Positions 9,640 to 60,959 of a stretch of 64,000 bases of DNA are shown in pieces. The stretch covers positions 2,418,001-2,482,000 of the forward strand of contig NC_086109.1 of assembly GCF_963921235.1 (NCBI RefSeq), read 5' to 3'. Position 1 is the first letter of the stretch. Each line of letters begins with the position of its first letter. The translations under genes were made by a program, and so were the position numbers. The DNA comes from Mobula hypostoma. Lineage: Eukaryota. Below the pieces are notes generated by a model, which was not told the DNA's origin, searched no databases, and saw only the letters and a program-made list of their open reading frames with translations.

Positions 9640-9960
9640 AGTATATAAGGCAATTTGGAATTGTTGAACAAAGGCAGGGGTTCCAGTAGAGGGGAGGACC
9701 ACCCCCTACACACACCCTCTGTGCTTGCGGGGCCAGGAGGGGCTGGCCCTCATTTCCCAGTGATTGGGTTTGGAGAGGTGCTCGCTGTCCCGATGGAGGG
9801 GGTATCTGTGAGCTGGGTTCTATTCCAAGGCATTGCTTGCAGGCTCCTTCGTTTGATCTTCCAAAGGCTGGGTCTCCACTGGCCTGTGGGATCGAGAGCA
9901 GAGTTGAGGGCTTCCAGTCGTGATACTGATACCTGGCCTTCCCTCCACAGAATCTCCCAG
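9640..9960 (+). mobile_element. Degenerate Tx1/L1-clade LINE 3' fragment
   Basis: Peptide GRGSSRGEDH..AVPMEGVSVSWVLFQG resembles the Tx1 ORF2 C-terminus (compare 23493-23729). A similar remnant lies near 12600-12960. Confidence 0.4.
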
Positions 9961-10330: not shown

Positions 10331-10399
10331 CATTGACTGTGTGCGTGATGGGTTTAGCAACAGTTATAAACCCAAATCTGGGTGATAAGAACAGGAAAT

Positions 10400-11720: not shown

Positions 11721-11759
11721 TTCACCCCTTTGCACAGGACATCCTTCCCCAGAGCAGAT

Positions 11760-12400: not shown

Positions 12401-13199
12401 TATGTTGAAATTTTCTTTTACATTATTGGATAATTTACCCTTGTATTTCATCTTTTTTTCCTTATTGGTTTTACAATTGTTCTCCACTCGGTCTTAAAAG
12501 CTTCCTGCTAAAATTCACCATATTGTATGCCTCCTTTGCTTTGCTTCTATGCTGCACCTGAATCCTTGTCCTCTCCATAGAGTGAGGTTCCAACCCCACT
12601 GGGACTGTGGAACAAGACCAGAAGTTCCACTGGGATGGAAACCCACTCCCAACCTCCTCACTCTGCATTGGGTCTGGGCTCCATTACCCAATAACTGGGT
12701 CTGTGGAGAGGTACTAGCTGTCCAGGTGAAGGGGGTGGCTTGTGTTGCAGTCTTCCTCAGTGGTTACATGTGAGCCGGGGACTCCCTCCTGGGATGCTAG
12801 CATCTATGTCTCTTTCAAGAGAGTCTGGGCTTGGTGTTCCCTCGGGGGGGATACCAGAACCCAGACTGATCCACTGCTCAGCCCTGATGTCCCCACCGAG
12901 TCGATGGGACAGAGTGCAGTTAGACCACTGTGGGCCTGGGGGACAGATCATTCTTTCTGGTGGTGGGACATTCCCACAGTTACACCACTGTGGACACAAT
13001 GGAGACCTCGCTTTCTCCAGTGAGTGATTATCAGACACCCAGTAACCTTGCAGCTTCATTCATTTTGCACAGACACTGTTCAATCTATTATGAAAGAGTG
13101 TGGAGACAAACTATGGTCACACCAACATGAACCTCAAAGTCTGTTTAAAGGGAATGGTTGAGGTTGTTGTCTCTTTTGCAACTGTCACAGCATTGGAAA

Positions 13200-16100: not shown

Positions 16101-16390
16101 GTTTCAATGGTTTCAGCATGGATTAGATGGACCGAAGGGCCGGTTTCTGTGCTGTATTTCTCTTCGACAATGACTCTAAAGGACTCACTGTGGATGAGAT
16201 ATTTCTGTTGGTGGACACACTTGAGGTCTCCAGCAGCTTTCTAATCTGCCATCTGACATGGTAAATGCAGGCTCAGTCTTAAATTTTAAGAATAAGTTGG
16301 ACAGGTACATGAATGGGAGAGTCTGGAGGGTTATGGACTGGATGCAGGTCAATGGGACTAACGGAATAATGTTTCAGCACAGACTAGAAG
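13200..16390 (+). mobile_element. Degenerate CR1 ORF2 (APE and RT) with 3' UTRs, interrupted by a PLE fold-back insert at ~13860-14050
   Basis: Peptides KENPKGFYRYVKSKR, STAPDKVFPRIL, TSVRPNLEHCMEFWSP. Numerous stops. Confidence 0.8.
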
Positions 16391-17049
16391 GGCCGAATGG
16401 CCTGTTTTCTGTGCTGTGGTTCTAAGGTTCTATTCCCCATGAGCTCCTCTACCATCTGCATCTTCAGGGAGGTGCTGCTGGAGATCACCCCATTCCCACT
16501 CAATCGTCAGCACAGCAGCCACGTCTCCTCTTTCTACCGCAAGCTGATGTGGAAGGAGGTTACTGACGGGCAGTTCATTGTTTGCTTCCCAGTGACAGAT
16601 AGCTGTGTGTCCCAGCCCTCAGGCTGCGCTTGGTGCCACTGGGATAGTACTGTTATGCCTGGCCTCTAACCCACTCCCGAGGCAGTAGGTGCGGATCAGC
16701 AGCGGGTAAGGAGGGAGGGGAATTTTTGGGTGGAAGGAAGGTGCAGAGGGTAACTGAACACTTCCATTCACATTACCTGGCCACCATCTCCAGTACTGCC
16801 CTTTCCCTGGGCCTGACCCTGGGAAGTCCACCTGTTCCAAGGCTGGGGGAGTCAGGCAGGAGGATGGAGTGTTGGAGGTGGTGACTTCCTGTTTGATAGA
16901 GTGTCTGAGCCTCTGTAACCCTCAGGGAAGGAGGAAATACTCTCACTAAGTTGAAGGGTGGTCTTGAGGTGCAGAGACCATTTAGGATTGGGGGATGAAG
17001 TCGGCTGCTGGGTCCACAGACATGATAGCCAATCCCTTGAACTATGCAG

Positions 17050-17350
17050 CTCCTGACTGACCATGCTAAGTTGCTGGAACTGAAGGAGGATATATTCAGG
17101 GCCATCCAGGATACTGAGAGCATCATCGATAACAGTTTCTGTACAGTAGTCACAGGTACACTGCAGATGAGTTGGTGAACACCAGGAAAGGTAGAGGGAG
17201 CAGCAACAAGTACTTCCCTTTGGACGCTGCTGCTGGGGGTAGGTGGGGAAATGAACTTTCAGGCCACAGCAGCAGCAGCCAAGCGGGTGGCACTGTGACC
17301 ACTGTGAGGCTCCGTGGGGAAGGGTAAAGTCACACTGAGCAATAGTGACA
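17050..17350 (+). mobile_element. CR1 ORF1 fragment
   Basis: LLTDHAKLLELKEDIFRAIQDTESIIDNSFCTVVT matches the CR1 ORF1 coiled-coil region. Confidence 0.6.
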
Positions 17351-17551
17351 GCTTATTGTCACCTCAGCTCTGTTCCCTCTAAAACTGCACAGGTGCATGG
17401 CTGCGCAACAACTGAAATGCCCTCATGCACATAGCCTTTGTTGCCATGCAGCAGGAATTGGATGCAGCTAGAAAAAGTTTTGAAACATGAAAGATTTACT
17501 TGTTGTACTGTATTTCATTTTACCCTTCAATTAATAAACAAAAATCCAAAG

Positions 17552-17735
17552 TATGGAAAAGAGTAAACAGTCGACGTTATAGGTCATGACCCTTCAAAGG
17601 ACTGCCAAAGGGTTTTGGCCTGAAATGTCAACTGTACTTTTTTCCCCTCGGTGCTGCCTAGCCTGCTGAGTTCCTCCAGCATTTTGTGTGTGTTGCTCGG
17701 ATGTCCAGCATCTGCAGATTTTCTCTTGCTTGTGA
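17552..17735. mobile_element. Fold-back PLE mini-element with back-to-back degenerate hammerhead motifs
   Basis: The minus arm ends at AGTCC.TTGAAGGG..AACGTCGACTG and the plus arm begins CTGCCAAAGGG..GCCTGAAATGTCAACTG, joined at 17600-17603. Confidence 0.65.
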
Positions 17736-18261
17736 TTCTGTTATGCTGGGTGTTGGTGTACTCTTGTATTTGTGTACTTTGCTGAGCTCAGACCGCAGTC
17801 TGGGCCATTAGCAAGCAGTGCTCTGAGAAATAGACAGAACTGGGATCCCTGAACATGACAGACCACACCTTTGACCTGGAGATGCTGTGGGATCTGTTTA
17901 ACTGTGACCCACAGATATAGACCATTTGGCCCTTCCATTACAGTCCCTCCCACCCCATTGGCTATTGCTCTGTTTTCCACTCCATATGTACTCAGTTCCT
18001 CCAGCCTCAGAGTCACGAGGTTCCCCATTGGCAGTTTGATGCTTCACAGCCTCTGGTCCAGTCTCTGGGGATGTGGTGAGTGTGTCCTCAAGCCTCACAC
18101 TGGCTCAATCCCACTACACTGGGACCATGAGCCCAGCTGTGGACACGGGCAGACAGTGGGGCTCAGAAAACAGGGGAACACACAGGATCTGCCCTCACCC
18201 ATTAATTAGGGGTATTTCAGGAACTGGTGAAACCTGGACCCCTTCATGGTATCTCACTTAC

Positions 18262-18570
18262 CAGCTACCTTCAGTTGCACTTTCCTCTTAGTCCGTGTTC
18301 CTGAACTTGTTGTAACAATCACCTCATAAACGTCAGTGTCCTCTTTCTGTAGATCATGGATTGTTAAACTACAGTCTGCTGGATGACAGCCAATCCGTTG
18401 CTTGTACTTTTTAGTATCGAGATATGTCAATTTCCCATTCATGCATTCTGCTATCTTGGTTGAGTCTGATAATATTCTCCACACAACATTGGTAATTTTT
18501 GGTAGTTTTAGGATCTCAGAAGTTAACAAAACCACTTCTCCGAGGGCACCTTCCACGACGGGAATCTCAT
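18262..18570 (-). CDS. Internal exon encoding a CD2/SLAM-type IgV domain (V2, 103 codons)
   Basis: Acceptor TTGTCTCCTCAG|AT and donor G|GTAAGT, phase 1/1, 309 nt, no stops. DEIPVVEGALGEVVLL..VVWR..YKQRI..SLTIHDLQKEDTDVYEV..LKV. Lacks the canonical B-F disulfide, as in CD2/SLAM/CEACAM N-domains. Confidence 0.9.
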
Positions 18571-18678
18571 CTGAGGAGACAAGTGAAAACAGTTATCAGG
18601 AGGAGGAATTAGTGCTGAGGAATCACAGACACAGGAGCAGCCATTTCAAGTTTCAGGATTCAAATCCAAGGTTGTTTA

Positions 18679-21417
18679 TGTCACAATGGTGGGGCATTGG
18701 GAGCAAGGGTGGACCCAAATGCAAGACACATCTTGTGAGGTTAATTAAATTGAGTTTATTGTTTGATACCAGCAGAGCAAAGCAGAAGCAGGAGTAGCAA
18801 ACTGGACAAGGACTCAGGATTACGACTAGGCTGGGACTAGGGGTCTGGGCTTGGACTCGGAATTGGATCCCAGAACTAGCAGCGACATGAAGAGGCTAGG
18901 GTATGGACTCCGAGACAGAGACTGGGCAAGGACCCAGTACCTGGGTCTTGCCTCGGGCTCGGACCCCAGAACCAGGCAAGGACATGACAGGGGCTAGGGA
19001 GAGGAGGAACATGGGAACACAGAGCCTCGGTCTTGGGAGAGCAGGCACATGGAACCATGGACACATACACAGAACACAGAGTCGGGACCCCTCCTTGGGT
19101 ACAGGACATAGGGCCGGGTCTCATGACACCCCCACGGGGCAACGGCAAGACGGCCTGACTTATCCCACGCAGATGAGGACAGGATATGACAAGACATGAC
19201 CCCCTGTGGGGCAACGGCAAGGTGGTCATACTTACCCCATGGAGGCGAGGACAAGACAAGACCAACACGAAAGAACACCAGACAGTACCTATCTTGCTCC
19301 GGCGATAGAACTAGACTGAAGTGCAGGCGAGTGCTGCAGACGAGGGCGAGAGGCGAGAGGGACAGAGAAGGGATTCAGACAGTGGGGTAGGACAGGAATC
19401 ACAGACCGCCAGGGCCAGGACTCGACTCGGAACTTGGATGCCGCCAGGGCCAGGAATCGACTCGGTACTTGGATGCCGCTAGGGACGGGACTTGACTTGG
19501 AGCCTCTGGGTAGTGGCGAGCTCTTGACTCGGCCCGGAAACAGTGGACAGCGGTTCTTGATTCCCTCTGGCGGGTTAACTGACGGACCCACCTCGGTGAG
19601 GAAACTTTGCAGGCTCGGTTTGGCAAGGTAACTTGACAGGGTTGCTCCGGTGAGGAAAGGTGAATTACTGGCACTTGCTTCGGGCGGAGACTAGGCTTGC
19701 TGCGGCCAGGTGACATTGGCACGCCGTACCTTTGGCGACTTTGCAAACGCTCTTGCACCGAACGGCTGAAAGCCGGAGACCATAAACTACCGGTTCAGTC
19801 GAGAGTAAATTGCCTCCAATCACCAAAGCCGAGAGACATGGGAAAACAGGGAACCAAAGGGCAACAGGGAGTCAACGGTCCGGATCGTAACATAAACAAA
19901 GTAAATTTAAAGGGACCCTGATTCAGACCATGACAGTATCCCCCCTCCCTCCCCAATAGGAGCCTCCAGGCAACCAACAGATTTGCCTGTATTATCGATG
20001 ACCTGGGTGGGTGGAGGGGGTTTTGGCCAGCGGGCAAAACAGAACAACAACACCTTGACTTTCAGGCTGACAAGAGTTTGGAAAAACAGTGTTTGTGTCT
20101 GCTGGGTCCATGTTTGGCGAGAGCGTTCTGTCACAATGGTGGGGCATTGGGAGCAAGGGTGGACCCAAATGCAAGGCACATCTTGTGAGGTTAATTAAAT
20201 TGAGTTTATTGTTTGATACCAGGAGAGCAAAGCAGAAGCAGGAGTAGCGAACCGGACAAGGACTCAGGATTATGACTAGGCTGGGACTAGGGCTCTGGGC
20301 TTGGACTCGGAATTGGATCCCAGAACAAGCGGCAACATGCAGAGGCTAGGGTATGGACTCCGAGCCAGAGACTGGGCAAGGACCCAGTATCTGGGTCTTG
20401 CCTCGGGCTCGGACCCCAGAACCAGGCAAGGACATGAGATGGGCTAGGGAGAGGAGGATCATGGAAAAACAGAGCCTCAGTCTCAGGAGAGCAGGTACAT
20501 GGAACCATGGACACATACACAGAATGCAGAGTCAGGACCCCTCCTTGGGTACAGGACATAGGGCCAGGACTCATGAACCCCCATGGGGCAACGCAAGACG
20601 GCCTGACTTACCCCACAGAGGCAAGGACAAGACACAACAAGACATGACCCCCCTCCCCCCCCCACGGGGGAATGGCAAGATGGCCTGACTTACCCCACAG
20701 AGGCGAGGACAAGACATGACCCCCCGTGGAGCAATGGCAACTCGGCCAGACTTACCCCACGGAGGCGAGGACAAGACAAGACCAACACGAAAGAACACCA
20801 GACAGTACCTATTTAGCTCCCGCGATAGAACTAGACTGAAGTGCAGGCGAGGGCTGCAGACGAGGGCTAGAGGTGAGAGGGGCAGAGAGGGGATTCAGAC
20901 AGTGGGGTAGGGTAGGAATCACGGACCGCCAGGGCCGGGACTTGACTCAGAACTTGGATGTACCCAGAGCCAGGACTTGACTTGGAGCCTCTGGGTAGTG
21001 GTGAGCTCTTGACTCGGCCCGGAACAGTGGACAGCGGTTCTTGATTCCCTCCAGCGAGTTAACTGACAGACCCACCTCGGTGAGGAAACTTTGCAGACTC
21101 GCTTTGGCGAGCTAACTTGACAGGGTTGCGCTGGTGAGGAAAGGCGAATTACCAGCACTCGCTTCGGGCGGAGACTAGGTTTGCTCCAGCCAGATGACAT
21201 TGGCACGCTGTACCTTGGTGACTTTGCAAACGCTCCCGGACTGAACGGCTGAAAGCGGAGACTATAAACTACTGGTTCAGTCGAGAGTAAATTGTCTCCA
21301 ATCACCAAAGCCGAGGGACACGGGAAAACAGGGAACCAAAGGGAAACAGGGAGTCAATAGTCCAGATCGTAACATAAACAAAGTAAATTTAAAGGGACCC
21401 CGATCCGGACCATGACA
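18679..21417 (-). mobile_element. Non-autonomous Gypsy (chromovirus/sushi-like) LTR retroelement: two long LTRs and a 193-bp internal region
   Basis: LTRs at 18679-19935 and 20129-21417 with TGTCA..TGACA termini. 5-bp TSD GTTTA (18674-18678, 21418-21422). PPT GGGGAGGGAGGGGGATAC on minus next to 19935. Gag-start remnant ATG GAC CCA GCA GAC (MDPAD) at 20111. Confidence 0.92.
20117..20128 (-). promoter_or_regulatory. Self-priming (Tf1-type) primer-binding site of the LTR element
   Basis: Minus-strand GAACGCTCTCGC directly follows the 5' LTR and lacks the TGG of tRNA PBSs. It is complementary to LTR sequence at 19746-19756 and 21229-21239, which begins 27 nt downstream of a TATA-like motif (21263-21266). 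Confidence 0.7.
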
Positions 21418-22522
21418 GTTTATTGTCACACTTCAGTACACAAGTGTAACGGAGAACAAAATAATTGTTACTGGATCCGAGGTAGCATAAAAAAAACATG
21501 AAGCATAAACAAAACAGTAAATATAGACACGAGACAGGCAGCGGATGCTGGAAATCCAAAGCAAAACACAAAATGCTGGAGGAACTCAGCAGGTCAGGCA
21601 GCATCAATGGAAATGAATAAACGGTAGACATTTTGGGCCGAAATCCTACATAAGAGTAGCTGATGTACATAAACTGATTGCATGTTCATAAAGTGACAAT
21701 AGGTAGTGGAATATCTGTACATTATGTTACTCTGACAGGAAGTTACAACATAATGGTGGTGGGTTTATCGGTGGACGTGTAGATTAGCCTGATGGCTTGA
21801 GGGGAGTCTGCTGGCACATTCTCTGGGTCCCAGCCCAGTGAGAGAGCTGGGCCACAGTGAGCCCACACAGGGAAGAGTGAAGACTTCTTGCACCCGGTCC
21901 TGAGGAAGGAAGTTGCAACTTGCAGCCAGATATCAATAGAGGGGGCAGAGCTGGGGGTGGTGGGGCACAGACACGACAAATTGGACCCCGTCCAGGGATG
22001 CGGTAGGGGTACTGTTTGGGGAAGGTGGGATGAATGGGAGAGTGTAAGTGGTGTGGAGGGACAAAGGGAACTTGCCCACAGATCTTTGAATGAGGAATGA
22101 CAAGAGGGTGAGGCAGTCTGTATCCCTGCATTTGTTGATCAGGATCCCAGATCTGTGAACGGGGATAATGAATGTCTGGGTGGGGATGGTCAGAGCTGAG
22201 GCAGGACAAGAGAGCTCTGTGGATGGAACAGGGCTGGGGAAGGTTAATGGAGGGGTCATGGCAGAATGAGGGAACAGAGGCTGGGGACAGATTTAATAGG
22301 GTGGTGAAACGATGAGGGTCCCTGACTAAACAGAAAGGATCTCTGTCTCTGGGCAGAGAAGACGATACCAAGAGCCGCAGAAAGTACTAGACCGAACGGT
22401 GAGAGGGAAGTGGGGAGTGTACTCCAGGGAAAACATTGTCATGTGTTGGGAGGGGTGGTGGAGGCCATGATGGTCCTCACACAGATCAAACCCTGCATGA
22501 ATAGGACCAGTCACTCTCTCAC

Positions 22523-22619
22523 TGAACGAGAGAGAGAGAGAGAGAGGTGTGAATATGTGAAATGAGCTGGACTGATACAGCATGAAGCTAGCAGGAAGCG
22601 ACAGGCTGAAGAGCCACAT
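22523..22619 (-). CDS. Candidate leader (signal peptide) exon for the V2 unit
   Basis: ATG at 22619, MWLFSLSLPASFMLYQSSSFHIFTPLSLSLSF, phase-1 donor A|GTGAGA. Homologous to 30232-30322, but a 7-nt indel breaks frame conservation between them. Confidence 0.3.
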
Positions 22620-22899
22620 TTGCTGAAATCTTCTGGTCATTCAGTAATTTCAGAGCTGGTTCACAATGGGCCACATGACCTTCCTCAGTTTCATGAGTTC
22701 CCAACATCTGTGGGCCCATCATTATGGGTGCCCACGCCAGGGAGACCTGGGTTTATAGACAGTCAAACCCTCTACAATGTCCCAACACACACCTCTAGGA
22801 CAGGGAAGACTAGGGTTACATTCAGAGTCAAACCCATCTACAATGTCTCAACAGAGACCTCTAGGACAGGGCAGGCTGAAACACTCCACTTTCAGACCC

Positions 22900-23880
22900 T
22901 GCAGGGTTATCTTCACACTGGGCATCCTCCCAGACTGGTGGTGTGGTGCATCTACCAGAGACACTGTCCCTCGGGAAGACTCCCAGCAATAAATATCAGC
23001 TGTCCTGCTCTGTTGTACTGAACTGGGACGGTCACCTTCATTCAGAGTGTTCCTCCACCAGCAGTGAGAGACTTTCTGGCTCCATGGATGGGTGGATGGA
23101 TGAAGCAGTGGATTGGATGAGACTCATAGCTGAAGCCTCTGGCTGTTCTGTCACAACGGGTGTTGAGGGGGCTCATCAATGAGGGTCATTCAGACCAGAT
23201 TGCCACCCATGGCCAGAACTATTCATCAGACCAAGGCTCAGAAGTTGTTCTTGAGATCTGGCCTCTCTGTGACATTTCTCCAGGAGCAGAGGTATTTCTT
23301 TTGCAGGCTGCTCCTGCAAACTCTTCAGTTTTTCACACTGGACATGTTGTGCCAGTCCGTTCTGGTGTCTGGAGTGGAGGTGTTTATGTAGGAGTCCTCC
23401 CCCTTTCCACTGGGGCCTGGAGAAGAGAATGTTGTGAGACAGGTTCCCAAGTCAATTAATGGGCTCCCCAGCCACCTCTCATTTCTGCAGCCTTGAGGAG
23501 AGAGTGTATCATGTATATATGGAGTGTGAGAGGCTGTAGGACTACTGAACCATCTGAAGGCGCTGTACCTCAAGTTCAGCTGCACCTCAGCCCTACCCTT
23601 GTGACCTTTGGTCACCCAATGCGAAGGCAGGTGAGTCACTTGGGAATTCTCCAGATCAATCTGCTCTTGGGCCTGGCCAAGGTGACCATTTTCGGATCCA
23701 AGTGGTGGCCACTTGAGGGTTTTCCCTGAGCCAAATGCCCTTCTTCTGGAGTTGTGTCCATACCCGCGTGTCCCAGGAGAAGGAGCACATGGGCTCTCTA
23801 GAGGGCAATGTGTTAACTTCAATTATGTACATATTGCAATGCGAGTGTGTATGTTAATATGAAAATCATATTTATAAAGA
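22900..23880 (+). mobile_element. Tx1/L1-clade LINE 3' fragment
   Basis: ORF 23493-23729 LHLSPTLVTFGHPMRR..INLLLGLAKVTI matches the Tx1-type ORF2 C-terminus. The upstream part is more degraded and its boundary is approximate. Confidence 0.6.
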
Positions 23881-24017
23881 AATACTCAGCTGAATTTACA
23901 ATTGGAAAGATGTGGGCTGCCGCCAGTCAGTGTGTGGGACAATGGAAAAGAGGGGGAGGTGGGGAGGGCCCAGACTGTCATCAGCCTCAGTGGAGGGAGT
24001 GAGCACACAGAGAGCAG

Positions 24018-24441
24018 TTTATTCTTGCACAAAAGGAAAAGCTTTCCTTCTGTTATATAATGTCAGTCTGGCAGAGCAATGTTGAGGGAGTTTGGAGAGG
24101 ATGACAAATCCGTGGGGTGGGGTTATAAATGCACTGATTTTGTTTAACCCCAGTGAACTTCCTCCACGCCCCCAGGTGAATGGCCCACATCTCCCAGGGC
24201 TGTGTGGGAAGAAAGGTTGATTACAGTCTTGTGTGGACAGCTCCCAGATGACTGGGGTGAAGAAACCTCCCCCAGACCAAGAGCCAGCAAAGGACAGCAA
24301 GAGTCAACCCAGTGAGGAGGAAAATTTGTTGTCTGTCTACCTCAGCCTGGAATTCCTAGTTCCTGAAAAAGAACTATCGAGGTTTCTGACTGAACCAAAT
24401 GCCTGTGCCTCTTCTGAGGAAATGTCCATGCTCAGGTGTCC
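24018..24441 (-). other. Candidate terminal exon of the V1-C2 unit (short tail, in-frame hydrophobic segment after stops, AATAAA)
   Basis: Acceptor GCTTCCTTCCCCAG|GG at 24442/24441. Phase 1 gives GTPEHGHFLRRGTGIWFSQKPR* (stop at 24374). The same frame later reads IFLLTGLTLAVLCWLLVW (24325-24272). AATAAA at 24023-24018. Confidence 0.35.
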
Positions 24442-24684
24442 CTGGGGAAGGAAGCATACCATGTCTCCTTGGATCAGTGGATATTCCGGGACTGGAGTGT
24501 GTCCTGGACAGGGATATCCATGTTTTAAAATGAGAACCATTCTCATGAAAGTCAGTGAACATATGTAAACTTTTTTTTTTGTAAAAGGGCGCAGATTACA
24601 CACAAAATAAAACTCCATCAGCACTATCTTATTGAACAGTCTGGGCAGCCTCTCTAAATTCCAATTGCTCCCTCTGACATTCAC

Positions 24685-24951
24685 CAGATTTGTTCTTTCC
24701 ACAGATGTCTCCCAGCCAGACCTCTGCCATTTCGTTACTGACGGGGTTCCGTGCCTCACACTCATACAGGACTTCTTTATCCCCTTTCGCCTCTCCATGC
24801 CGCTGGAGGTGATAGTGGCTGCCAGTTCCCACAACTTCTCCTCCCCTCCACCACCTGAAGGTGGAGTTGCCTGAATCTTCAGAGCAGATCAAGGTGATAT
24901 TGCAAGTCTTGGCGATGTACTGAACCATGATGACTGTACCTGACACAGGAC
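24685..24951 (-). CDS. Internal exon encoding a CD2/SLAM-type IgC2 domain (89 codons)
   Basis: Acceptor TTTTTCTGTCTCGACCTCAG|GT and donor G|GTGAAT, phase 1/1. PVSGTVI..TCNITLICS..FRWWR..YECEARNPVS..DIC has the four-Cys pattern and NPVS motif typical of CD2/SLAM C2 domains. Sequons NIT, NST, NKS. Confidence 0.9.
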
Positions 24952-25689
24952 CTGAGGTCGAGACAGAAAAAGAAAGGTGAATTAAGAAGATCCTTATCGA
25001 CACCTTAATCCCCAACTCCCGCATTCCATCCCAACAGAAACACATGAAATTTAAACCAGTCCCAACTCATTTCCAACCCAACAGTTTAACTCTTCTCTCA
25101 CCCTTCAGTTCAGCCAGTTACTGCTGCAGGAAGTTCCCACAAGTGCTGCACCCTCTTTCACAAGAGTTACTCATAAAGCTGCGTCATGTCTTGCTGATGT
25201 CTGTGTGTTCCAGGAATTCATTCCAGCTCCATTTCTTTGTTCAGTAGAAACTTTATGTTTGACCATTCAGCCCCTTCCTGTCTGCTGCCCCATTCATGGC
25301 TGATTGCCCTCCACCTCGTTTTCCTGCACCAAACTCACATCCTTTAATTCCCTTGACATCCAAAAACCATCCACATCTACGTTGAATACCCCATGTGACT
25401 GAACTTCTGTAGTGCTGTTTAGTAAAGAGCTGTGAAAATTCACTAGCCTCTGGGTGTGATTTCTCCCGTGTATTACATCCTCTCTTAGTCTGGAGCAGCT
25501 GAGCTCATATTCTATCACTCCAGCCAGGGCTCCATCCTGCAGAACCCGATGAGGTGTTTGGATGTTTCAGTGTGATCACCTCTCATCCCCTCATTTGGCA
25601 GTAGGCACCACCATAGTCGGCCAAATCTCAAATAATGATGAGTCAGAGCCGAGGAGTGAGGTAAAGAGCCTAGTGATGTGTTGCCATGA

Positions 25690-26400
25690 CAGCCATCTTT
25701 CTCAATGTCAGTAAAACAAGAGTTGGTCATTGACTTCAAAATGTTGGGAGTGGGTGGTGTGGAGAGTGAGGGTAGACAATCCTTAACCACAACACTGTCG
25801 AAGCTGAGAAGGCTGCAGTTCGCAGGACTGAACATCACTGATAGACAGTCTTGGTCAAACTCAATAAAGGTTCAAAGCTTCATAAGTATGTGTGTACAAT
25901 ACAACTCTGATATGTCTCTACTTCAGATAGCCACTAAACACAGAAAGAAATGGTGTTGCTGAATGAAAAGCCATTAACTCTTCCCCGACACAAAAAAAGA
26001 GAAGAAACAGAAGTCACAGTCCCCAAAATCCCCCCTTTCCCACAGCAAAAAAAAAGTGACAATAACCACCCCCAACACCCCTCACTCACAGAAAAGACCA
26101 GCCACAATAACAGTCCCCGACCCTCTCACTCGCAAAAATTAACTTCCACAATAACAGTCCCTGGCCCCCTCACTCGCAGAAAAGAACAGCACTTCAACAC
26201 ACTAAAAACCATTGGCATGTCCCCTTTAACCCTCACCAGCTTTTGTAGATGCACCATAGAAAGCATCATGGGTGCATCACACTTGTTATGGCAACTGTTT
26301 TGTATGTGACTGTAAGAAACTGCAGAGAGTTGTGAACACAACTAAGTATATCATGGAAACCAGCCTCCTATCCATGTACACTTGTCCGCAATTCACTTAC
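25690..26400 (+). mobile_element. Rex1/Babar-type LINE fragments with an inserted short tandem repeat (26040-26190)
   Basis: NVSKTRVGH.LQ and LTSFCRCTIESI..KKLQRVVNTTKYIMETSL motifs. Confidence 0.55.
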
Positions 26401-26439
26401 AACATAGAAAAGACACCATCCCAGAGTTCAGAACAGTCA

Positions 26440-27480
26440 TCAAGTCATAGAAAATTACAGCACAGTAACAGATCTTTGGTCCTTCTGCTCCATGCCAAAA
26501 TCATTTAAACTGTCTGCTCCAATCGACCAGCGCCAGGAGCATAGCTCTCCATACAGTACCATCCATGTACCTGTCCAAACTTCTCTTAACTGTTGAAATT
26601 GAGCTTGCACTTCTGGTGACAGCTCATTTCATATTCTCATGACACTCTGTGAAGAATTTTTCCCTCATGTTCCCCCTAAACTTTTCACCTTTCACCCTTA
26701 ACCTATGACCTCTGTTTGTAGTCCTACGCAACTGCAGTGAAAAAACACCTGTTTGCATTTACTCTATTTATACCCTCATAATTTTGTATACCTCAATCAA
26801 GTGTCCCCTCAGTCTTTTACATTCCAAGGAATAATGTCCTAACCTATTCAATCTTTCCTTATAACTCATGTCTTCCAGACCCGGCAACAACCTTGTAAAT
26901 TTTCTCTGCACTCTTTCAACCTTATTTACATCTTTCCTGTAGGCAGCTGACCAACACCGCACATAATATTCCAAAGTAGGTCTCATCAACATTTTATGCA
27001 ACTTCAACTAACATGCCAACTCCTGTACTCAATACTTTGATTTATGAAGGCTATTGTTCCAAAATTCTTCTTTACGACCCTATCTACCTCTGACACCACT
27101 TCCGATGAGTTATAGACCTGTGTTACTATATCCCTTCGTTCTACCACAGTCCTCAGTGGCATACCATTCACAGTGTAAGATCTATCTTGGTTGGTCCTAT
27201 CAAAGTAAAACATGTCACACTTATTGGCATTAAATTCCATGTGCCATTTTTCAGTCCATTTTCAGCTGGTCCAGACCCTGCTGCAAGATCTGATGGTCTT
27301 CCTTGCTGTCTACTATATCCCTAATCTTGATGTCATCTGCAAATTTGCTGACCCAGTTAACCACATTATCGTCCGGGTCGTTGATATAGATGACAAACAA
27401 CAATGGACCAAGCACAAATCCCTGCAGCATTTGCCTTGTCACAGACATCCAGTCAGAGAGGCAGCAATAGCTGAATAATT
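26440..27480 (-). mobile_element. 5'-truncated degenerate CR1
   Basis: QGFVLGPLLFVIYIND..VSKFADD, EFNANKC, RPTLEYYVRCWS..RKDVNKVERVQR. Confidence 0.85.
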
Positions 27481-29412
27481 CAGCCAAAACAATCTATGAC
27501 CTCTGACATCCTCTGGGAGAACAGGGAAAGGCAGAGCTACGGAATATCAGCAGCCGTCTGGATGATGTAGATGGAGCAGCCAGCAGGATCTATGAATGGA
27601 GCTGATCAAGCCATTGAAAACATTGGAGTCTCACTGTCAGTAATTGTATTGTTAAGTGTCGACTCTGTTTCTCCATGATACTAAATAAACTCCCTGTCTT
27701 CATTACAGAGCTTGGGTCCATGCTCTTCAGGTCAGAATTAATTGGGAGTTCTTGGTGAGACTATTTTGGTGTCCTGTGTCTCACTGAAGTTGTTACAGAT
27801 GAAGAGGGCTGAATGCCCTTAGTTGGTAAAGTTACCAAGTGACAGCAATGATCATGGAGACTGGGAGCAGGTGTGAAATAGTCAAGGACAGGACCTGCCT
27901 GGAGTGAATCAACAGTCGGGGGGGCTACAAGGATGCGCCACCTCGTGGGGTAGAGGGTGGAATCTAGAGTGAGGACACAGCATCAGAATAAGTGTCTGCC
28001 CATTTCACACAGAGACGAGGAGTTGGGGGTGTGGGGAACAGGCAGGAAAGTGGACCCAAGGCTGCCAAACCAACCCTGACAGTACTAGGCTTGGGGGCGG
28101 ATTGGTCTACTCCCCCTATTTCTCATTTTCTAATGTTATCCCTCCAATGGGAACCATTTAACCCTGGGATGGAAGAGAGAACATTTCTCAGCCAAACTTC
28201 AGACGGATGTTGCTGGGTGAGATTATTTTCAATGGTTCATTGGTTCAATTTAATATCAGAGAATGTATACAGTATCCAACCTGAAATTCTCACACTTCAC
28301 AGACATCCACGAAACAGAGGAAAACCCCAAAGAATGACTGACAGAAAAATGTTGGAACCACAAAGTCCCCCCACGCCCCTCTCACGCACAAGTGGCAGCA
28401 AAGCATGATCCTTCCCCACTTCCCGTTTCACCCACATTCCAGCAGGAAGCATCAGCCCCACACCACCTTCAGGCAAGCGATAGCAAACCCCCAAAGAGAC
28501 CATGATCGAGGTCCATCAAAAACTATAGTCCACAAACCAGCACTTCAACATGCCACAGGGAGAGAGAGATGTCGTCCCTTCCACAGCGAGAGAGGAGACC
28601 AACAAACAGATCACTGTTTTGATATTGCAGTCTGTAGTCTACTTTGAATGTAATGTTATTGCTAGAGTGAGTCAGGAACCATATTGATGTGTGTGAGTGT
28701 GCTGTTGTGTCCGTGTACCGTGTCACTCACTAGGACACTATATTCAGTGTAATGAGTACACAAGGTATCACTCAGCACAGCACAGCATGAAGGCTGAGGA
28801 ATAAACACTTTGCTGAGCTCAGTCTGGGCAATTAACAAGCAATGCCCTGGGAAACTGATGGGATAACTTGAATCCCTGAACATGACAGACCAGATCTTTA
28901 ACTGGGGATACAGTGACCCACAGACCACTCACCCCCTTTACAGACCCTCCCACCTTATGGGTCCATTGTTCAGCTCAGGTTCCCATGGGTCAAGCAGAGA
29001 AACATCAATGGAAAGAGGCCATTCAGCCCAACTCAACAATCTCTGTGCTGTTCTAAGCTAGTCCCATTTGCCTCCAGACCTTTCATCCATGAACCTGGCC
29101 AAATGCTGTTTAAACACTCACCCTGTAACCACATCTTCCATAGTCCACCCGAGTGCTGATCTCCTCTGGACTCAGAGTAATGAGAGTCATCATTACTTCT
29201 TCTCGGGCTCTGACTCAGTCTCAGGGGATGTGGTAAATGTGTTCCCCAGACTGTCTCAATCCCACTACACTGGGACCATGAGCCCAGCTCTGGACACGGG
29301 CAGTCACTGGGGTTCAGTAAACAGGGAAGCACACAGGATCTGCCCTCACCCATTAATTGGGGGTGTTTCAGGAACCGAAGAAACCCGAGCCCCTCCGCGG
29401 TGTCTCACTCAC

Positions 29413-29733
29413 CGTACACCTCCAGTCGCATTTTGTTCTGAGTCTGTGCTCCTGTACTTGCTGTAACAGACACCTCATAAACATCAGAGTCACTTTTCTG
29501 TAGATCACGGATTTCCAGACCGAAGTTCCTGGGATGAAGAGTTATCCGTCGCTTGTACTCCTCAGATCCGTAATAGTCACTGATCTTGTTTGAATATGAC
29601 ACAATCTTCGCTCTGGGTGAGAACCGTCTCCACACAAGCTGAGCAATGTCTTCTCCGACTGGGATCCCAGGAAGTAAGGAGACCGAGCGTCCCAGAGCTC
29701 CGTTCACAGTGGTAGAGGAATCCCCAGTCCCAG
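29413..29733 (-). CDS. Internal exon encoding a CD2/SLAM-type IgV domain (V1, 107 codons)
   Basis: Acceptor CTCTTGTCTCCTCAG|CT and donor G|GTGAGT, phase 1/1, 321 nt. GTGDSSTTVNGALGRSVSL..LVWR..YKRRITLHPRNFGLEIRDLQKSDSDVYEV..LEVY. No Cys (CD2/SLAM/CEACAM-type V). Confidence 0.9.
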
Positions 29734-30231
29734 CTGAGGAGACAAGAGGAGACAGTCAGCAGATGAGCTCAGTGACTGGAGGATGAATCAGACTGGGAGA
29801 ATCAGAGTTACAAGAGCGGGTGATGGGTCTCATTGTTTGTCTCCCGGCCCTGTGAGAGAAGCAGCCCACCATTCCAACAGTACACGGTAAGCTCAAGAGA
29901 GGAACAGAGTGAAGACTCTTTGCACCCGGTCCAGAGGATGGAAGTTGCAGCCTGCAGCCAGATATCAAAGGCAGGTCAGAGGGGCACAGGTATGAAAAAT
30001 GAGACCCATTCGGGAGAAGGGTTGGGTGAGGTGCTTGGGGAGGTGAACGTGTTGAGGGAACATGTGATAAATGGAAGTTCGTGAGTGCTGTGAGGGACAG
30101 AGGGAGCTCGGAGTGGGGCCTTGCCGGGCACATCCACAGATCCCTGAAGGAGGAGTGAGGGAGAAGATGAGGCCGTTTGTTGCTCCTGGCCGAGGTTTTG
30201 TGAACAGGTTGCGGGGGGAGCTGATAATCAC

Positions 30232-30422: not shown

Positions 30423-33400
30423 GTCAATCTCTGCCTTCCCCACCGCTGTGCTGGTATCCAGTGTCACCCTCTGCTTCCCCACTGCTGTGCTGGTATCCAG
30501 TGTCACCCTCTGCTTCCCCACTGCTGTGCTGGTATCCAGTGTCACCCTCTGCTTCCCCACTGCTGTGCTGGTATCCAGTGTCACCCTCTGCTTCCCCACT
30601 GCTGTGCTGGTATCCAGTGTCACCCTCTGCTTCCCCACTGCTGTGCTGGTATCCAGTGTCAATCTCTGCTTCCCCACTGCTGTGCTGGTATCCAGTGTCA
30701 ATCTCTGCTTCCCCACCGCTGTGCTGGTATCCAGTGTCACCCTCTGCTTCCCCACTGCTGTGCTGGTATCCAGCGTCACCCTCTGCTTCCCCACTGCTGT
30801 GCTGGTATCCAGTGTCACCCTCTGCTTCCCCACCGCTGTGCTGGTATCCAGTGTCAATCTCTGCTTCCCCACTGCTGTGCTGGTATCCAGTGTCACCCTC
30901 TGCTTCCCCACTGCTGTGCTGGTATCCAGTGTCACCCTCTGCTTCCCCACCGCTGTGCTGGTATCCAGTGTCACCCTCTGCTTCCCCACCGCTGTGCTGG
31001 TATCCAGTGTCACCCTCTGCTTCCCCACTGCTGTGCTGGTATCCAGTGTCAATCTCTGCTTCCCCACTGCTGTGCTGGTATCCAGTGTCAATCTCTGCTT
31101 CCCCACTGCTGTGCTGGTATCCAGTGTCAATCTCTGCTTCCCCACTGCTGTGCTGGTATCCAGCGTCACCCTCTGCTTCCCCACTGCTGTGCTGGTATCC
31201 AGTGTCACCCTCTGCTTCCCCACTGCTGTGCTGGTATCCAGTGTCACCCTCTGCTTCCCCACCGCTGTGCTGGTATCCAGTGTCACCCTCTGCTTCCCCA
31301 CCGCTGTGCTGGTATCCAGCGTCACCCTCTGCTTCCCCACTGCTGTGCTGGTATCCAGTGTCACCCTCTGCTTCCCCACTGCTGTGCTGGTATCCAGTGT
31401 CAATCTCTGCTTCCCCACTGCTGTGCTGGTATCCAGTGTCAATCTCTGCTTCCCCACTGCTGTGCTGGTATCCAGTGTCAATCTCTGCTTCCCCACTGCT
31501 GTGCTGGTATCCAGTGTCAATCTCTGCTTCCCCACCGCTGTGATGGTATCCAGTGTCAATCTCTGCCTTCCCCACCGCTGTGCTGGTATCCAGTGTCAAT
31601 CTCTGCTTCCCCACTGCTGTGCTGGTATCCAGTGTCAATCTCTGCTTCCCCACTGCTGTGCTGGTATCCAGTGTCAATCTCTGCTTCCCCACTGCTGTGC
31701 TGGTATCCAGCGTCACCCTCTGCTTCCCCACTGCTGTGCTGGTATCCAGTGTCACCCTCTGCTTCCCCACTGCTGTGCTGGTATCCAGTGTCACCCTCTG
31801 CTTCCCCACTGCTGTGCTGGTATCCAGTGTCAATCTCTGCTTCCCCACTGCTGTGCTGGTATCCAGTGTCAATCTCTGCCTTCCCCACTGCTGTGCTGGT
31901 ATCCAGTGTCACCCTCTGCTTCCCCACTGCTGTGCTGGTATCCAGCGTCACCCTCTGCTTCCCCACTGCTGTGCTGGTATCCAGTGTCAATCTCTGCCTT
32001 CCCCACTGCTGTGCTGGTATCCAGTGTCAATCTCTGCCTTCCCCACCGCTGTGCTGGTATCCAGTGTCACCCTCTGCTTCCCCACTGCTGTGCTGGTATC
32101 CAGCGTCACCCTCTGCTTCCCCACTGCTGTGCTGGTATCCAGCGTCACCCTCTGCTTCCCCACTGCTGTGCTGGTATCCAGTGTCACCCTCTGCTTCCCC
32201 ACTGCTGTGCTGGTATCCAGTGTCAATCTCTGCTTCCCCACCGCTGTGCTGGTATCCAGTGTCAATCTCTGCCTTCCCCACCGCTGTGCTGGTATCCAGT
32301 GTCAATCTCTGCTTCCCCACCGCTGTGCTGGTATCCAGTGTCACCCTCTGCTTCCCCACCGCTGTGCTGGTATCCAGTGTCAATCTCTGCCTTCCCCACC
32401 GCTGTGCTGGTATCCAGTGTCACCCTCTGCTTCCCCACTGCTGTGCTGGTATCCAGTGTCACCCTCTGCTTCCCCACTGCTGTGCTGGTATCCAGTGTCA
32501 ATCTCTGCTTCCCCACTGCTGTGCTGGTATCCAGCGTCACCCTCTGCTTCCCCACCGCTGTGCTGGTATCCAGCGTCACCCTCTGCTTCCCCACTGCTGT
32601 GCTGGTATCCAGTGTCACCCTCTGCTTCCCCACCGCTGTGCTGGTATCCAGTGTCACCCTCTGCTTCCCCACTGCTGTGCTGGTATCCAGTGTCACCCTC
32701 TGCTTCCCCACCGCTGTGCTGGTATCCAGCGTCACCCTCTGCTTCCCCACTGCTGTGCTGGTATCCAGCGTCACCCTCTGCTTCCCCACTGCTGTGCTGG
32801 TATCCAGTGTCACCCTCTGCTTCCCCACTGCTGTGCTGGTATCCAGTGTCAATCTCTGCCTTCCCCACTGCTGTGCTGGTATCCAGTGTCAATCTCTGCC
32901 TTCCCCACCGCTGTGCTGGTATCCAGTGTCAATCTCTGCCTTCCCCACTGCTGTGCTGGTATCCAGTGTCAATCTCTGCCTTCCCCACCGCTGTGCTGGT
33001 ATCCAGTGTCAATCTCTGCTTCCCCACCGCTGTGCTGGTATCCAGTGTCACCCTCTGCTTCCCCACTGCTGTGCTGGTATCCAGTGTCACCCTCTGCTTC
33101 CCCACTGCTGTGCTGGTATCCAGTGTCAATCTCTGCCTTCCCCACTGCTGTGCTGGTATCCAGTGTCACCCTCTGCTTCCCCACCGCTGTGCTGGTATCC
33201 AGTGTCACCCTCTGCTTCCCCACTGCTGTGCTGGTATCCAGTGTCAATCTCTGCCTTCCCCACTGCTGTGCTGGTATCCAGTGTCAATCTCTGCCTTCCC
33301 CACTGCTGTGCTGGTATCCAGTGTCAATCTCTGCCTTCCCCACCGCTGTGCTGGTATCCAGTGTCACCCTCTGCTTCCCCACTGCTGTGCTGGTATCCAG

Positions 33401-34670
33401 TGTCACCCTCTGCTTCCCCACTGCTGTGCTGGTATCCAGTGTCAATCTCTGCTTCCCCACCGCTGTGCTGGTATCCAGTGTCACCCTCTGCTTCCCCACT
33501 GCTGTGCTGGTATCCAGTGTCACCCTCTGCTTCCCCACTGCTGTGCTGGTATCCAGTGTCAATCTCTGCCTTCCCCACTGCTGTGCTGGTATCCAGTGTC
33601 ACCCTCTGCTTCCCCACCGCTGTGCTGGTATCCAGTGTCACCCTCTGCTTCCCCACTGCTGTGCTGGTATCCAGTGTCAATCTCTGCTTCCCCACTGCTG
33701 TGCTGGTATCCAGTGTCACCCTCTGCTTCCCCACTGCTGTGCTGGTATCCAGCGTCACCCTCTGCTTCCCCACTGCTGTGCTGGTATCCAGCGTCACCCT
33801 CTGCTTCCCCACTGCTGTGCTGGTATCCAGTGTCACCCTCTGCTTCCCCACTGCTGTGCTGGTATCCAGTGTCAATCTCTGCTTCCCCACCGCTGTGCTG
33901 GTATCCAGTGTCACCCTCTGCTTCCCCACTGCTGTGCTGGTATCCAGTGTCACCCTCTGCTTCCCCACTGCTGTGCTGGTATCCAGTGTCAATCTCTGCC
34001 TTCCCCACTGCTGTGCTGGTATCCAGTGTCACCCTCTGCTTCCCCACCGCTGTGCTGGTATCCAGTGTCACCCTCTGCTTCCCCACTGCTGTGCTGGTAT
34101 CCAGTGTCAATCTCTGCTTCCCCACTGCTGTGCTGGTATCCAGTGTCACCCTCTGCTTCCCCACTGCTGTGCTGGTATCCAGCGTCACCCTCTGCTTCCC
34201 CACCGCTGTGCTGGTATCCAGTGTCACCCTCTGCTTCCCCACTGCTGTGCTGGTATCCAGTGTCACCCTCTGCTTCCCCACTGCTGTGCTGGTATCCAGT
34301 GTCACCCTCTGCTTCCCCACTGCTGTGCTGGTATCCAGTGTCAATCTCTGCTTCCCCACTGCTGTGCTGGTATCCAGTGTCAATCTCTGCTTCCCCACCG
34401 CTGTGCTGGTATCCAGTGTCAATCTCTGCTTCCCCACTGCTGTGCTGGTATCCAGTGTCAATCTCTGCTTCCCCACTGCTGTGCTGGTATCCAGTGTCAC
34501 CCTCTGCTTCCCCACTGCTGTGCTGGTATCCAGTGTCACCCTCTGCTTCCCCACTGCTGTGCTGGTATCCAGTGTCAATCTCTGCTTCCCCACTGCTGTG
34601 CTGGTATCCAGTGTCAATCTCTGCTTCCCCACTGCTGTGCTGGAATCCAAGGTCAATCTCTGCCTTTCTC
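30423..34670. repeat. 39/40-bp minisatellite (VNTR), about 108 units by length
   Basis: Unit CACTGCTGTGCTGGTATCCAGTGTCACCCTCTGCTTCCC. Variants CACC/CAAT, ACT/ACC, AGT/AGC, and a 40-bp form (CTGCCTT). No spacers. Confidence 0.98.
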
Positions 34671-34679
34671 ACTGTTCTG

Positions 34680-34821
34680 TTGGAATGATGTAAACAAGCT
34701 TGAAGGGGTACAAAGAAAACTGCTGGGTCCAGTGGACCTGAATTATCAGGAAACATTGAACAAGTTATGACTGTGTTCCTGAGAATGTAGAAGATTTAGA
34801 GCAGATTTGATGGAGGTATAA
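34680..34821 (+). mobile_element. CR1 RT C-terminal fragment abutting the minisatellite (resumes at ~35530-35880)
   Basis: NDVNKLEGVQRK..LNYQETLNKL, then EVYKIVRGIDRVNASRLFP..FTQRTVRVWNKL. Confidence 0.75.
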
Positions 34822-58743: not shown

Positions 58744-60959
58744 GAAAAACACAAGTCTTTTTGATTAAACTCACGCTCTGAGATGGACAGTGTCAGCCCG
58801 AGGGAGATGAGAAACCACCCGAAGGCCATATCTCTCCAGCAACTGCCGTGTTCGATAGGACTGGCTTCTGCTTGCAGCCGGTTGTTGGTTGTGACCCGTC
58901 TGAGAACGTGTGTAGGCGTTGTGAGCACATTCAGGAAGCCACAACTTCACGTCAGCATGGAGGCTGTGACAGTGGGTGCATGTCAGTGACTGATCACTTC
59001 CGCAAGACATGGAGATTTACAGCGATTATGTTTGATATCATTAATAGTAACCCCTCATTTCAAATAGATGACAGAAAGCCACGGAGCGACATGCCAGATA
59101 ATATGGCAAAGATATTTTTAATGACGTCCTATGAAGGAAGCTTGAAGGCAATTGGGCAAAGTCAAAAGGAAATCGGGTTTGACCAACTTACTGAAGTTCT
59201 TGAAAGAAGTGACATGCGTTTTGGATAAAGGGGAATGGGAAAGACTATAACTTTGATTTCTGGAAGCCAAGTGATAAAGTGCTGAAATGAAAGTGTTTGC
59301 AGAAACTATAGGCCTGTGGTATTGGAAACAACGAGTTGGTGTGAGTAGAAGATAGGCTGGATAATAGGGAACAATATGGCCATAAAGTTCAAAGTCCAAA
59401 GATGAGTTTATTGTCATGTGTGCAAGTACATGTTTGCAAATTAAAACTTACTTTCAGCGTAATCTCAGACACGAAGCACCCTATAAGCAGCATTTACAAA
59501 ACAAAGCATAATTATCCATAAACATGAGAAAATCTGCAGATGCTGGAAATCCAAAGCAACGCACACAAAATGCAGCAGGAACTGGCAGGTCAGGCAGCAG
59601 CCATGGGAAAGAGTAAACAGTCGTGTTTTTGGGCAAAGACCGAATGGAGAGTCTCAGACTGAAATGTCAAATGTTGTGGAGATTAAGGTGTTTTCCAACT
59701 GCTTCAAGAACCAAATGTTTGAGGAAAAGTAGCTGTTCTTGTTCACCTATATACTTACTGTAATACTGTTTTTTTTCTCTATATTTATTTATCATGTATT
59801 TCATTGTATTGCTGGCATAAAGTTAACAAATTTCATGACATATCCGGTGATATTAAACCTGATTCTGATTGAACTTGACCATGTAGGACTCTAAAGTTCT
59901 GTACCAACTGCCCAAAGATAGCTGCAAAAAGCTGGCTTGGCTGAGATATTGGGGATCTTTGATGACGGACGCTGCCTTCTTGAGGCAATCTTGCCTTCTT
60001 GGCAGGGAGGGATGTGCCTTTGCTGTGTTAGACAGATCCCATTACTTTATGCACCTTCTTACAAGACAATTATGTAATCAGGATACTTTCAACTGTAATT
60101 GCTTGTCAGAGTGTTCAGTGACAAGCCAAACTTTATGTAGGTGGCACACTTTCCTTCTACAGTGTTTGCATCCATGCACGGGGCCCGAAACAGATCATCC
60201 AGCATATTTATGCACAGGAATTAATAAAACTGCTGATTCTCTCCAACGCCATTCATCAATGTAGACTGATGAATGTTCATCCTCCTTCTCTTCCTGAGTC
60301 AGGTCTGCAGATTTGCTGGTGAGCCATAAGACATACAGGAGCGGAGTTATACCATTCAGCCAATCGAGTCTGCTATGCCATTCAGTCATGGCTGATTCAC
60401 CTTTCCTCTCACTGCCTTTCTTCTGCCTTCTCCCCGTTACCTTTGGAGTCCTGACTAATCAAGAACCTATGAACCTCCATTTTAAATACACAGTGACATT
60501 GCCTCTGCAGATCATTGTGGCAATGAGTTCTGCAGATTCACACCCTAAGGCAAAATAAATCCTCCCTCATCTCTGTTACACAGGGATGTTCTTGTATTCT
60601 AAGTTAGTACCCCACTGGTCCTGTACTACCCCACTACTGGAAACATCCTTTCCATGTCCGATCTATATTCAATATTTTCATTATTCAATAATTTTCAATG
60701 AGATGCCCCAATATTCTTCTTCAACTCCACTGAGTATAAGCCCAAGCTATTAAAAGCTCCTCATACATTAACCCTTTCATTTTCAGCATCATTCTCATGA
60801 AAGTCTTGCTGGACCGTCTCTAATGCCAAAACATCTGTCCTGAGATAAGGAACATAAACTGCTCACAATACTCTGTGCATTCTGACCAACGATGATAAAG
60901 CCTTGGCATTATATCCTTGTTTTCATATTCTAGTCCTCTGAAAAAGGTTGCAAACATTG

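Follow-up and report, generated by a model that had tools for sequence, protein, structure and literature searches.

Background

In mammals, Ly9/SLAMF3 (CD229) is a SLAM-family receptor whose immunoglobulin (Ig) domains have been duplicated internally (V-C2-V-C2), and CD48, SLAMF8 and SLAMF9 are members of the CD2 family without signalling tails that carry the immunoreceptor tyrosine-based switch motif (ITSM). At MHC (major histocompatibility complex) loci, introns are homogenised while exons diversify. A 'peak of divergence' in duplicates under gene conversion has been described for exon 5 of the red/green opsin genes, for RHCE/RHD, and for colobine RNASE1 (PMC3924837). A search of the available literature found no paper on SLAM/CD2 genes in cartilaginous fish. 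The present work concerns a gene of this kind, LOC134355366, which lies in a 64-kb stretch of the genome of the devil ray Mobula hypostoma (the window, part of NC_086109.1; all coordinates are positions in it). At issue are two of its exons, each encoding a V-set domain: Vd, the N-terminal (distal) one, and Vp, the membrane-proximal one.

The original prediction, in which Vp was called V1 and Vd was called V2, took these exons for a recently duplicated, rapidly diversifying receptor pair that had diverged far more than the flanking introns. We put at about even the chance that another account is right as a whole, namely that a V unit was duplicated long ago within a single gene, that conversion has kept the flanks of the two units alike, that the exon cores have stayed distinct, and that the ectodomain evolves fast.

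A single V-C2-V gene

Vd and Vp are the distal and membrane-proximal V domains of one expressed gene with a V-C2-V layout. A profile search led to P0001 (XP_062921216.1), the uncharacterised M. hypostoma protein of LOC134355366. When the leader exon (58775-58829), Vd, the C2 exon, Vp, and the last exon from position 9883 are joined, the translation is that of all 361 residues of XP_062921216.1, and the junctions used are canonical splice sites. (Both V exons have a pyrimidine tract with an AG acceptor, and a GTAAGT or GTGAGT donor.) In addition, a 693-nt contig from a run behaving as RNA matches the Vp exon over its exact extent, without a single difference, and extends past it by 296 nt on one side and 86 nt on the other, and is thus spliced at both ends; the length of the 296-nt extension fits the 267-nt C2 exon together with the beginning of Vd. 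Because the five joined exons give the annotated protein exactly and the RNA contig is spliced on both sides of Vp, the two exons belong to one gene and not to two receptors. The notion of a receptor pair is also at odds with the relatives: the same V-C2-V layout is found in the neighbouring gene P0151 (LOC134355367) and in the orthologues of M. birostris, Hypanus sabinus, and Hemitrygon akajei, in all of which the second V leads directly to a transmembrane (TM) segment and a short tail without an ITSM.

Searches of the window by tblastn with the tails of relatives, by hydrophobicity scans, and by a motif scan found no second C2, TM, or ITSM exon. In particular, the region between Vp and the last exon (9884-18261) has no TM exon, whereas the neighbour and the orthologues do have one. 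The exon that follows Vp in the gene model is the last one; with no TM exon intervening, it is read out of its ancestral frame and gives a tail of 42 residues. In that ancestral frame it is still open, with a C-terminus that resembles that of the orthologues. The window copy could be a secreted V-C2-V protein, or it could be a recently disabled but still transcribed copy. At the other end of the gene, M. birostris P0160 and P0163, which are nearly identical genes, have different leaders (MWMVSPLL... and MAFGWFL...), a difference which implies that first exons in the family are alternative or have been exchanged.

Relationship to the CD2/SLAM family

The assignment of the V exons to the CD2/SLAM family, already made in the original prediction, is sound. 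Matches to Pfam V-set score 33.5 bits for Vd and 31.7 bits for Vp (cut-off 26). A phmmer search against solved structures returns CD48 (6.5e-7) and CD2 (4e-6), then SLAMF6, SLAMF5, and CD58; for Vd, the leading hits are CD48, CD2, and SLAMF6. The AlphaFold model of Vp (pLDDT 90) has strands A-G, and Foldseek with this model finds CD84, CD48, 2B4, CD2, and NTB-A nearest (TM-score 0.80-0.85). The C2 exon shows the C...C / Y.C pattern and is 70-73% identical to the C2 of ray 'SLAM family' proteins, with a weak match to Pfam Ig_2 (19.7 bits, E 1e-3; cut-off 27 bits).

The canonical disulfide between strands B and F is absent from both V domains. Vd is without any cysteine, and Vp has none on its B or F strands; the cysteines of Vp are at domain positions 45, 62, and 67. 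Those at 45 and 67 (P0001 residues 259 and 281) are kept in all orthologues and absent from Vd, and they may form a disulfide of a non-canonical kind. (At 281, Tyr takes the place of the cysteine in the neighbouring M. hypostoma gene.)

Like Ly9, the ray gene has V domains of the CD2/SLAM type that lack the canonical disulfide, and behind its V-C2 unit comes a second V from an intragenic duplication. Furthermore, several ray relatives are named 'Ly-9-like' by NCBI, and some relatives (P0004, P0009) have the arrangement V-C2-V-C2-TM. However, the tandem of two complete V-C2 units that is typical of Ly9 is not present in the window, which has a single C2 exon; the ray gene and its orthologues run V-C2-V and then TM, with the window copy lacking even the TM exon. 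No ITSM (TxYxxV/I) occurs in any plausible exon of the window or in the tails of P0151, P0160, P0161, and P0162. With CD48, SLAMF8, and SLAMF9 the ray gene shares its best sequence and structure matches (CD48, CD2, CD84), the short tails of its orthologues, which are free of tyrosine motifs, and the names 'CD48 antigen-like' and 'SLAM family member 8-like' that NCBI gives to ray proteins. Unlike these proteins, which have two Ig domains, the ray gene has three, and its orthologues are anchored by a TM segment, whereas CD48 is anchored by glycosylphosphatidylinositol (GPI).

Divergence of the V exons and their flanks

The Vp and Vd exons align without gaps, with 45/105 identical residues (43%) and 193/315 identical nt, close to the earlier figure of 43/100. 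The other founding observation, that the intron at 18106-18225 is identical to that at 29257-29376 at 110/120 positions, was reproduced exactly, again with no gap. This likeness is beyond chance: the best 120-nt window holds 111 identities, a value reached in 0 of 20,000 permutations in which the rest of the alignment served as background. In the last 35 codons, the 15 amino-acid changes and 20 conserved residues counted previously stand, while the nt differences number 23 and not 26, and 2 of the 20 conserved residues, not 3, use another codon.

Followed along the alignment, identity is 73% in the upstream intron, 54% in the first two-thirds of the exon, and 76% in its last third. It is 71% over the first 35 intron nt (where, reading the alignment by eye, about one third of the differences are CpG versus TpG/CpA), 92% over the intron island that comes next (island D), 78% over the 64 nt past the island, and then, farther out and with many gaps, 65% followed by 61%. 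The alignable non-coding flank as a whole is identical at 389/541 positions (72%) and the exon at 192/311 (62%; Fisher p = 0.003), a comparison that counts only alignable flank and for this reason flatters the flank. The contrast between exon and intron is real but had been overstated, and the core of the claim holds in a weaker form: outside the island the flanks are only 61-78% identical, and the value of 92% is local.

The two V units are collinear over about 1.3 kb at 68-70% (blastn) once an inserted element of the long terminal repeat (LTR) type is allowed for. The direct repeats of this element lie at 18676-19263 versus 20126-20721 (89.6%) and at 19129-19937 versus 20659-21419; beyond it, collinear homology with the Vd unit restarts at 21853.

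Nei-Gojobori estimates for Vp versus Vd are dS 0.51 and dN 0.56 (omega 1.1), with dS values of 0.43, 1.77, and 0.14 in the three successive thirds of the exon. Given an omega of 1.1, an uneven dS, and saturation of the middle third, this comparison is uninformative and was rejected as a test of selection; because of the saturation, in particular, it cannot show selection. The original prediction had placed itself in opposition to a dN/dS below 1, or to a short intron tract accompanied by high exon dS. Part of that opposing picture is what is found, in that the tract is short and local while omega is 1.1.

Intron blocks beside the V exons

Only short intron blocks by the V exons stay 84-92% alike (Table 1). 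Island D is one of these, a local tract of significantly raised similarity (110/120 on a background of 72%). It lies within a wider tract, for which blastn aligns 18042-18408 with 29199-29559 at 78.8%, and in the part of the exon that adjoins it, the last third, dS is 0.14 versus 0.78 in the first two-thirds (p = 0.002). The second block, block U, is 69 nt long and is found on the other side of the exon. It is also present in a third V unit, on Logan contig L001:1035-1103, at 78-84% identity (84% to the copy of the Vd unit), and the exons of the three units that bear it are only 60-70% identical.

Read depth, counted at a likeness of at least 80%, is 4-12x single-copy over 17864-18243 in M. 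hypostoma DNA and 2-8x in M. birostris DNA, with its peak over island D. Over the Vp exon it is 1.3-2.5x in same-species DNA. Because the depth of the island exceeds that of the Vp exon, the V exons with this block beside them must outnumber those that resemble Vp.

An Rfam scan of 17-31 kb, at E values up to 1, gave no match, and folding of both island copies on both strands gave z values of -1.0 to -2.4, with no convincing RNA structure. The idea that the island is coding was rejected, given that its open frame on the + strand changes 8 residues for 10 nt differences; exon-sized open reading frame (ORF) relatives were sought both for Vp and for the spurious ORF that spans the island, and none came up.

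Table 1. Positions of the exons, intron blocks, and inserted element discussed in the text
Feature	Position	Strand	Details
Vp, membrane-proximal V-set exon (formerly V1)	18262..18570	-	309 nt; phase 1-1; AG acceptor, GTAAGT donor
Vd, N-terminal (distal) V-set exon (formerly V2)	29413..29733	-	321 nt; phase 1-1; splice sites
C2-type Ig exon, between the two V exons	24685..24951	-	tblastn of P0001 and relatives; splice sites
Leader (signal peptide) exon, ~29 kb upstream of Vd	58775..58829	-	tblastn; GTGAGT donor
Last coding exon	9750..9883	-	read out of ancestral frame in the annotated model
Island D, copy beside Vp, starting 37 nt past the donor	18106..18225		110/120 to 29257-29376
Island D, copy beside Vd	29257..29376		110/120 to 18106-18225
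Wider tract of raised similarity (last third of exon and first ~220 intron nt)	18042..18365		260/318 = 82% to 29199-29516
Block U, Vd unit, 165-233 nt upstream of exon	29898..29966		87% to 21868-21934
Block U, Vp unit, cut off from its exon by the inserted LTR element	21868..21934		87% to 29898-29966
Inserted LTR-type element, interrupting the intron upstream of Vp and hiding the upstream homology of the units	18679..21417		direct repeats

Age of the two V domains

Maximum-likelihood analysis of 31 V domains places the proximal Vs of Mobula (including M. birostris), Hypanus sabinus, and Hemitrygon akajei in a 100/100 clade with a stem of 1.02 changes per site. The window Vd falls in a Mobula clade (100/98) within a group that also holds the stingray distal Vs (92/97). 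Exon phylogeny follows orthology, then, with a clade of proximal Vs across three genera, and the domains of the Vp type elsewhere are 85% (M. birostris), 68% (Hypanus), and 65% (Hemitrygon) identical to that of the window. Because the proximal Vs of the three genera group together in this way, the split between Vp and Vd is old: the tree shows that the V duplication predates the divergence of devil rays and stingrays, and that most of the difference between Vp and Vd arose on the old Vp stem. Today's 57% protein divergence between the two is thus mostly old. A recent duplication, as originally proposed, fits neither this grouping of Vp nor a background non-coding identity of about 70%.

Evolution of the ectodomain between Mobula species

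DNA contigs of a second species were aligned over 16420-18678. They differ from the intron of the window at 38/1024 and 14/424 positions, which makes 52/1448 (3.6%), and the exon contig differs at 26/498. Because these base differences reproduce residues of M. birostris P0160, i.e. G275K (18389-18391), A279G, T284I, and V220L, the contigs represent the M. birostris orthologue. The minimum number of nonsynonymous changes relative to M. birostris is 20 at 240 sites in Vp (8.3%, 2.3x intron, p = 0.003), 15 at 235 sites in Vd (6.4%, 1.8x intron, p = 0.048), and 8 at 206 sites in C2 (1.1x intron). These counts support the conclusion that between Mobula species the ectodomain continues to change faster than the intron, with Vp in the lead. 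The description of the exons as rapidly diversifying is borne out to this extent, in the comparison with M. birostris; as a statement drawn from Vp versus Vd, where dN/dS is uninformative, it has no such footing.

The original prediction had looked to the GFCC'C'' face for the sites under selection. On the AlphaFold model, the GFCC'C'' sheet with its loops accounts for 49/105 positions but for only 3/16 of the changed Vp sites; strands A, B, D, and E and the BC loop carry the others. Because so few of the changed sites are there, any selection on Vp is, on this model, not aimed at the classical binding face of the CD2 family. As at MHC loci, the exon of an immune recognition domain diverges faster than its flanking introns. 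Unlike the MHC, where the copies are alleles or recent paralogues and selection acts on a known peptide-binding surface, the changes in Vp avoid the CD2-family face.

The tandem gene pair

A tandem pair of these genes is present in both Mobula species. Within M. birostris the members of the pair differ at 2 (Vd), 0 (C2), and 0 (Vp) residues, and within M. hypostoma at 1 (Vd), 0 (C2), and 13 (Vp); between the two species there are 13-15 (Vd), 8 (C2), and 16-19 (Vp) differences. That the paralogues are alike within species and different between them suggests gene conversion, or else independent duplications. Among the 13 differences between the two M. hypostoma copies of Vp (p = 7e-6 versus Vd plus C2) is a run of five at residues 235-239. 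At residues 238-239 the neighbour keeps the stingray state and the window copy shares the M. birostris state, which argues that the history of Vp is mosaic; for this reason, and because at a likeness of 80% the flank of the neighbour past ~1.1 kb found no placement on the window, the contrast of 13 versus 1 between the two M. hypostoma genes was not accepted as proof of selection. Derived Vp changes number about 6 in the TM-bearing neighbour versus 3-4 in the TM-less window copy.

Vp of the neighbour has two N-x-T sequons, N239-I-T, which is shared with stingrays, and N250-S-T, which is new; both are absent in the window copy and in M. birostris. Among the same-species reads at 18296-18591 there is a 377-nt contig that has 34 differences in 296 nt relative to the Vp exon and diverges fully beyond 18296. 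This is a third, more distant copy of the exon, and there may be a further paralogue or an exon relic elsewhere in the genome.

Gene conversion and competing explanations

The mechanism that we favour would have begun with the duplication, inside the gene and before devil rays and stingrays split, of a V-exon unit consisting of the exon and a few hundred intron bases on each side. Vp would then have changed very fast on its stem lineage. The 92% island would be the peak of a tract of raised similarity of ~320 nt, and non-allelic conversion between V-exon flanks would keep this tract and block U alike in a tandem family that is prone to conversion, while the exon cores would stay distinct because converted exons are selected against. 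That island D and block U owe their likeness to such conversion is something that we infer with somewhat less than even confidence, and selection is likewise inferred as the cause of exon divergence. Conversion is favoured because a tract-like peak coincides with a low dS in the adjoining third of the exon and with concerted evolution at the locus. Like the described cases of a 'peak of divergence', this locus has an exon that has diverged beyond the intron next to it, an exon tree in keeping with orthology, and a tandem family with signs of concerted evolution; it differs from them in that the copies are two exons of one gene, and only intron blocks of ~70-320 nt, not whole introns, are alike. 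Several points weigh against this account. In its last third, Mobula Vp has retained residues that are specific to Vp and occur in stingrays as well, so that conversion since the stingray split cannot have replaced this part of the exon wholesale, and a wholesale recent conversion of it was rejected. Moreover, the low dS there rests on ~3 synonymous differences, and both the 5-12 copy-equivalents of the island and the sharing of block U with an unrelated contig would suit a conserved element too. As to the fast ectodomain, the excess of exon over intron is calculated from minimum change counts inferred from proteins, and changes that lie in a cluster (4 adjacent bases at 18389-18392) could each be one event, in which case the Vp ratio is 1.9 (p = 0.03).

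The strongest competitor to conversion, which we judge nearly as likely as conversion though clearly below an even chance, is that island D and block U are functional non-coding elements, for example controlling the splicing by which V exons are included or acting as an enhancer, and that purifying selection has preserved them in all V-exon units of the family ever since the duplication, with no conversion needed. This would explain why the exon has on either side of it a separate block better conserved than the exons themselves; why block U is kept in the third V unit, which stems from a different data set and has an exon so much less alike; and why the depth of the island (5-12x single-copy in M. 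hypostoma, 6-8x in M. birostris) exceeds what the four V units of the tandem pair give. Just a 4-5-fold slowdown relative to the flanks would be needed. However, this explanation gives no reason to expect so low a synonymous divergence in the exon third beside the island, which counts against a constraint that is purely intronic, and it finds no help in the Rfam and folding results or in the frame across the island, which has changed so freely. In addition, the third unit (L001) may not come from another species, so that the likeness may be one between units and not across species, and the extra depth may come from many recently duplicated Vd-like units. A decaying window copy, in which the excess of exon divergence is neutral drift in a transcribed pseudogene, is an improbable explanation. 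It could draw on the missing TM exon, on the annotated tail that is the ancestral last exon out of frame, and on the derived state of the window copy at residues 228, 229, 237, and 284. But drift predicts a ratio of 1, not the 2.3 observed, and in each of the four ectodomain exons the frame is open and the splice sites are canonical, with splicing seen in RNA. Furthermore, the divergence between Vp and Vd predates the loss of the TM exon, being seen in TM-bearing orthologues too, and simple decay is unlikely as the cause because the TM-bearing neighbour has at least as many derived Vp changes as the window copy. Least credible, and in our estimation very improbable, is the original reading of a young receptor pair, with V exons driven apart by diversifying selection and introns that reveal the youth of the duplication. 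It is true that the exon is more diverged than any alignable flank, that in the last 35 codons dN is 0.30 versus a dS of 0.14 and an island divergence of 0.09 (p = 0.002 versus the island), and that the ectodomain outpaces the intron between species. Yet the V-domain tree contradicts this reading, with Vp orthologues in two stingray genera; the flanks outside the island are far too diverged for it; the exons encode two domains of one protein; and over the whole exon dN/dS is 1.1 with dS as high as 1.77.

Other features of the window

A tandem satellite of 4.2 kb (30423-34686; period ~78 nt, ~95% between copies) lies inside the 29-kb first intron of the gene. The segment at ~17400-17790 is an extremely high-copy repeat, its summed contig depth reaching 8 million in DNA of the same species and 4.8 million in that of M. 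birostris; the RNA run, too, contains it in abundance and with numerous inverted joints, and a small inverted copy is present at 13864-13989. Inverted transposon copies are found at 15166-16186 versus 26424-27463 (71% identical), with reverse-transcriptase-like ORFs at 26768-27487, and, at 93% identity, at 40839-42417 versus 46323-47899 and at 44705-46319 versus 62382-64000.

Conclusions

A greater divergence of exon than of intron is a known kind of pattern in immune gene families, and as it stands the locus exemplifies, in an ordinary way, dynamics familiar from immune genes, here in a lineage that has been little studied. The analysis corrects a tempting misreading: old paralogous exons set against one hand-picked stretch of intron cannot show recent diversifying selection. 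What emerges is a three-domain V-C2-V branch of the CD2/SLAM family that is conserved across devil rays and stingrays, with an inner V domain that evolves at about twice the intron rate between two Mobula species, and does so on a non-canonical face, and with short intron blocks beside the V exons that outlast the coding sequence.

It is conceivable, if unlikely, that block U and island D are functional 'cassette borders' of the V exons in a ray SLAM/CD2-like cluster, where they would anchor exon-sized conversion and unequal exchange and perhaps control exon inclusion. With such borders, entire V domains could be exchanged, multiplied, or kept distinct, which would account for the many V-V-V, V-V-C2-V, and V-C2-V-C2 layouts of the family. 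Should the blocks turn out to act as anchors of conversion or as splicing elements, they would help to explain how the varied multi-V receptors of cartilaginous fish are built.

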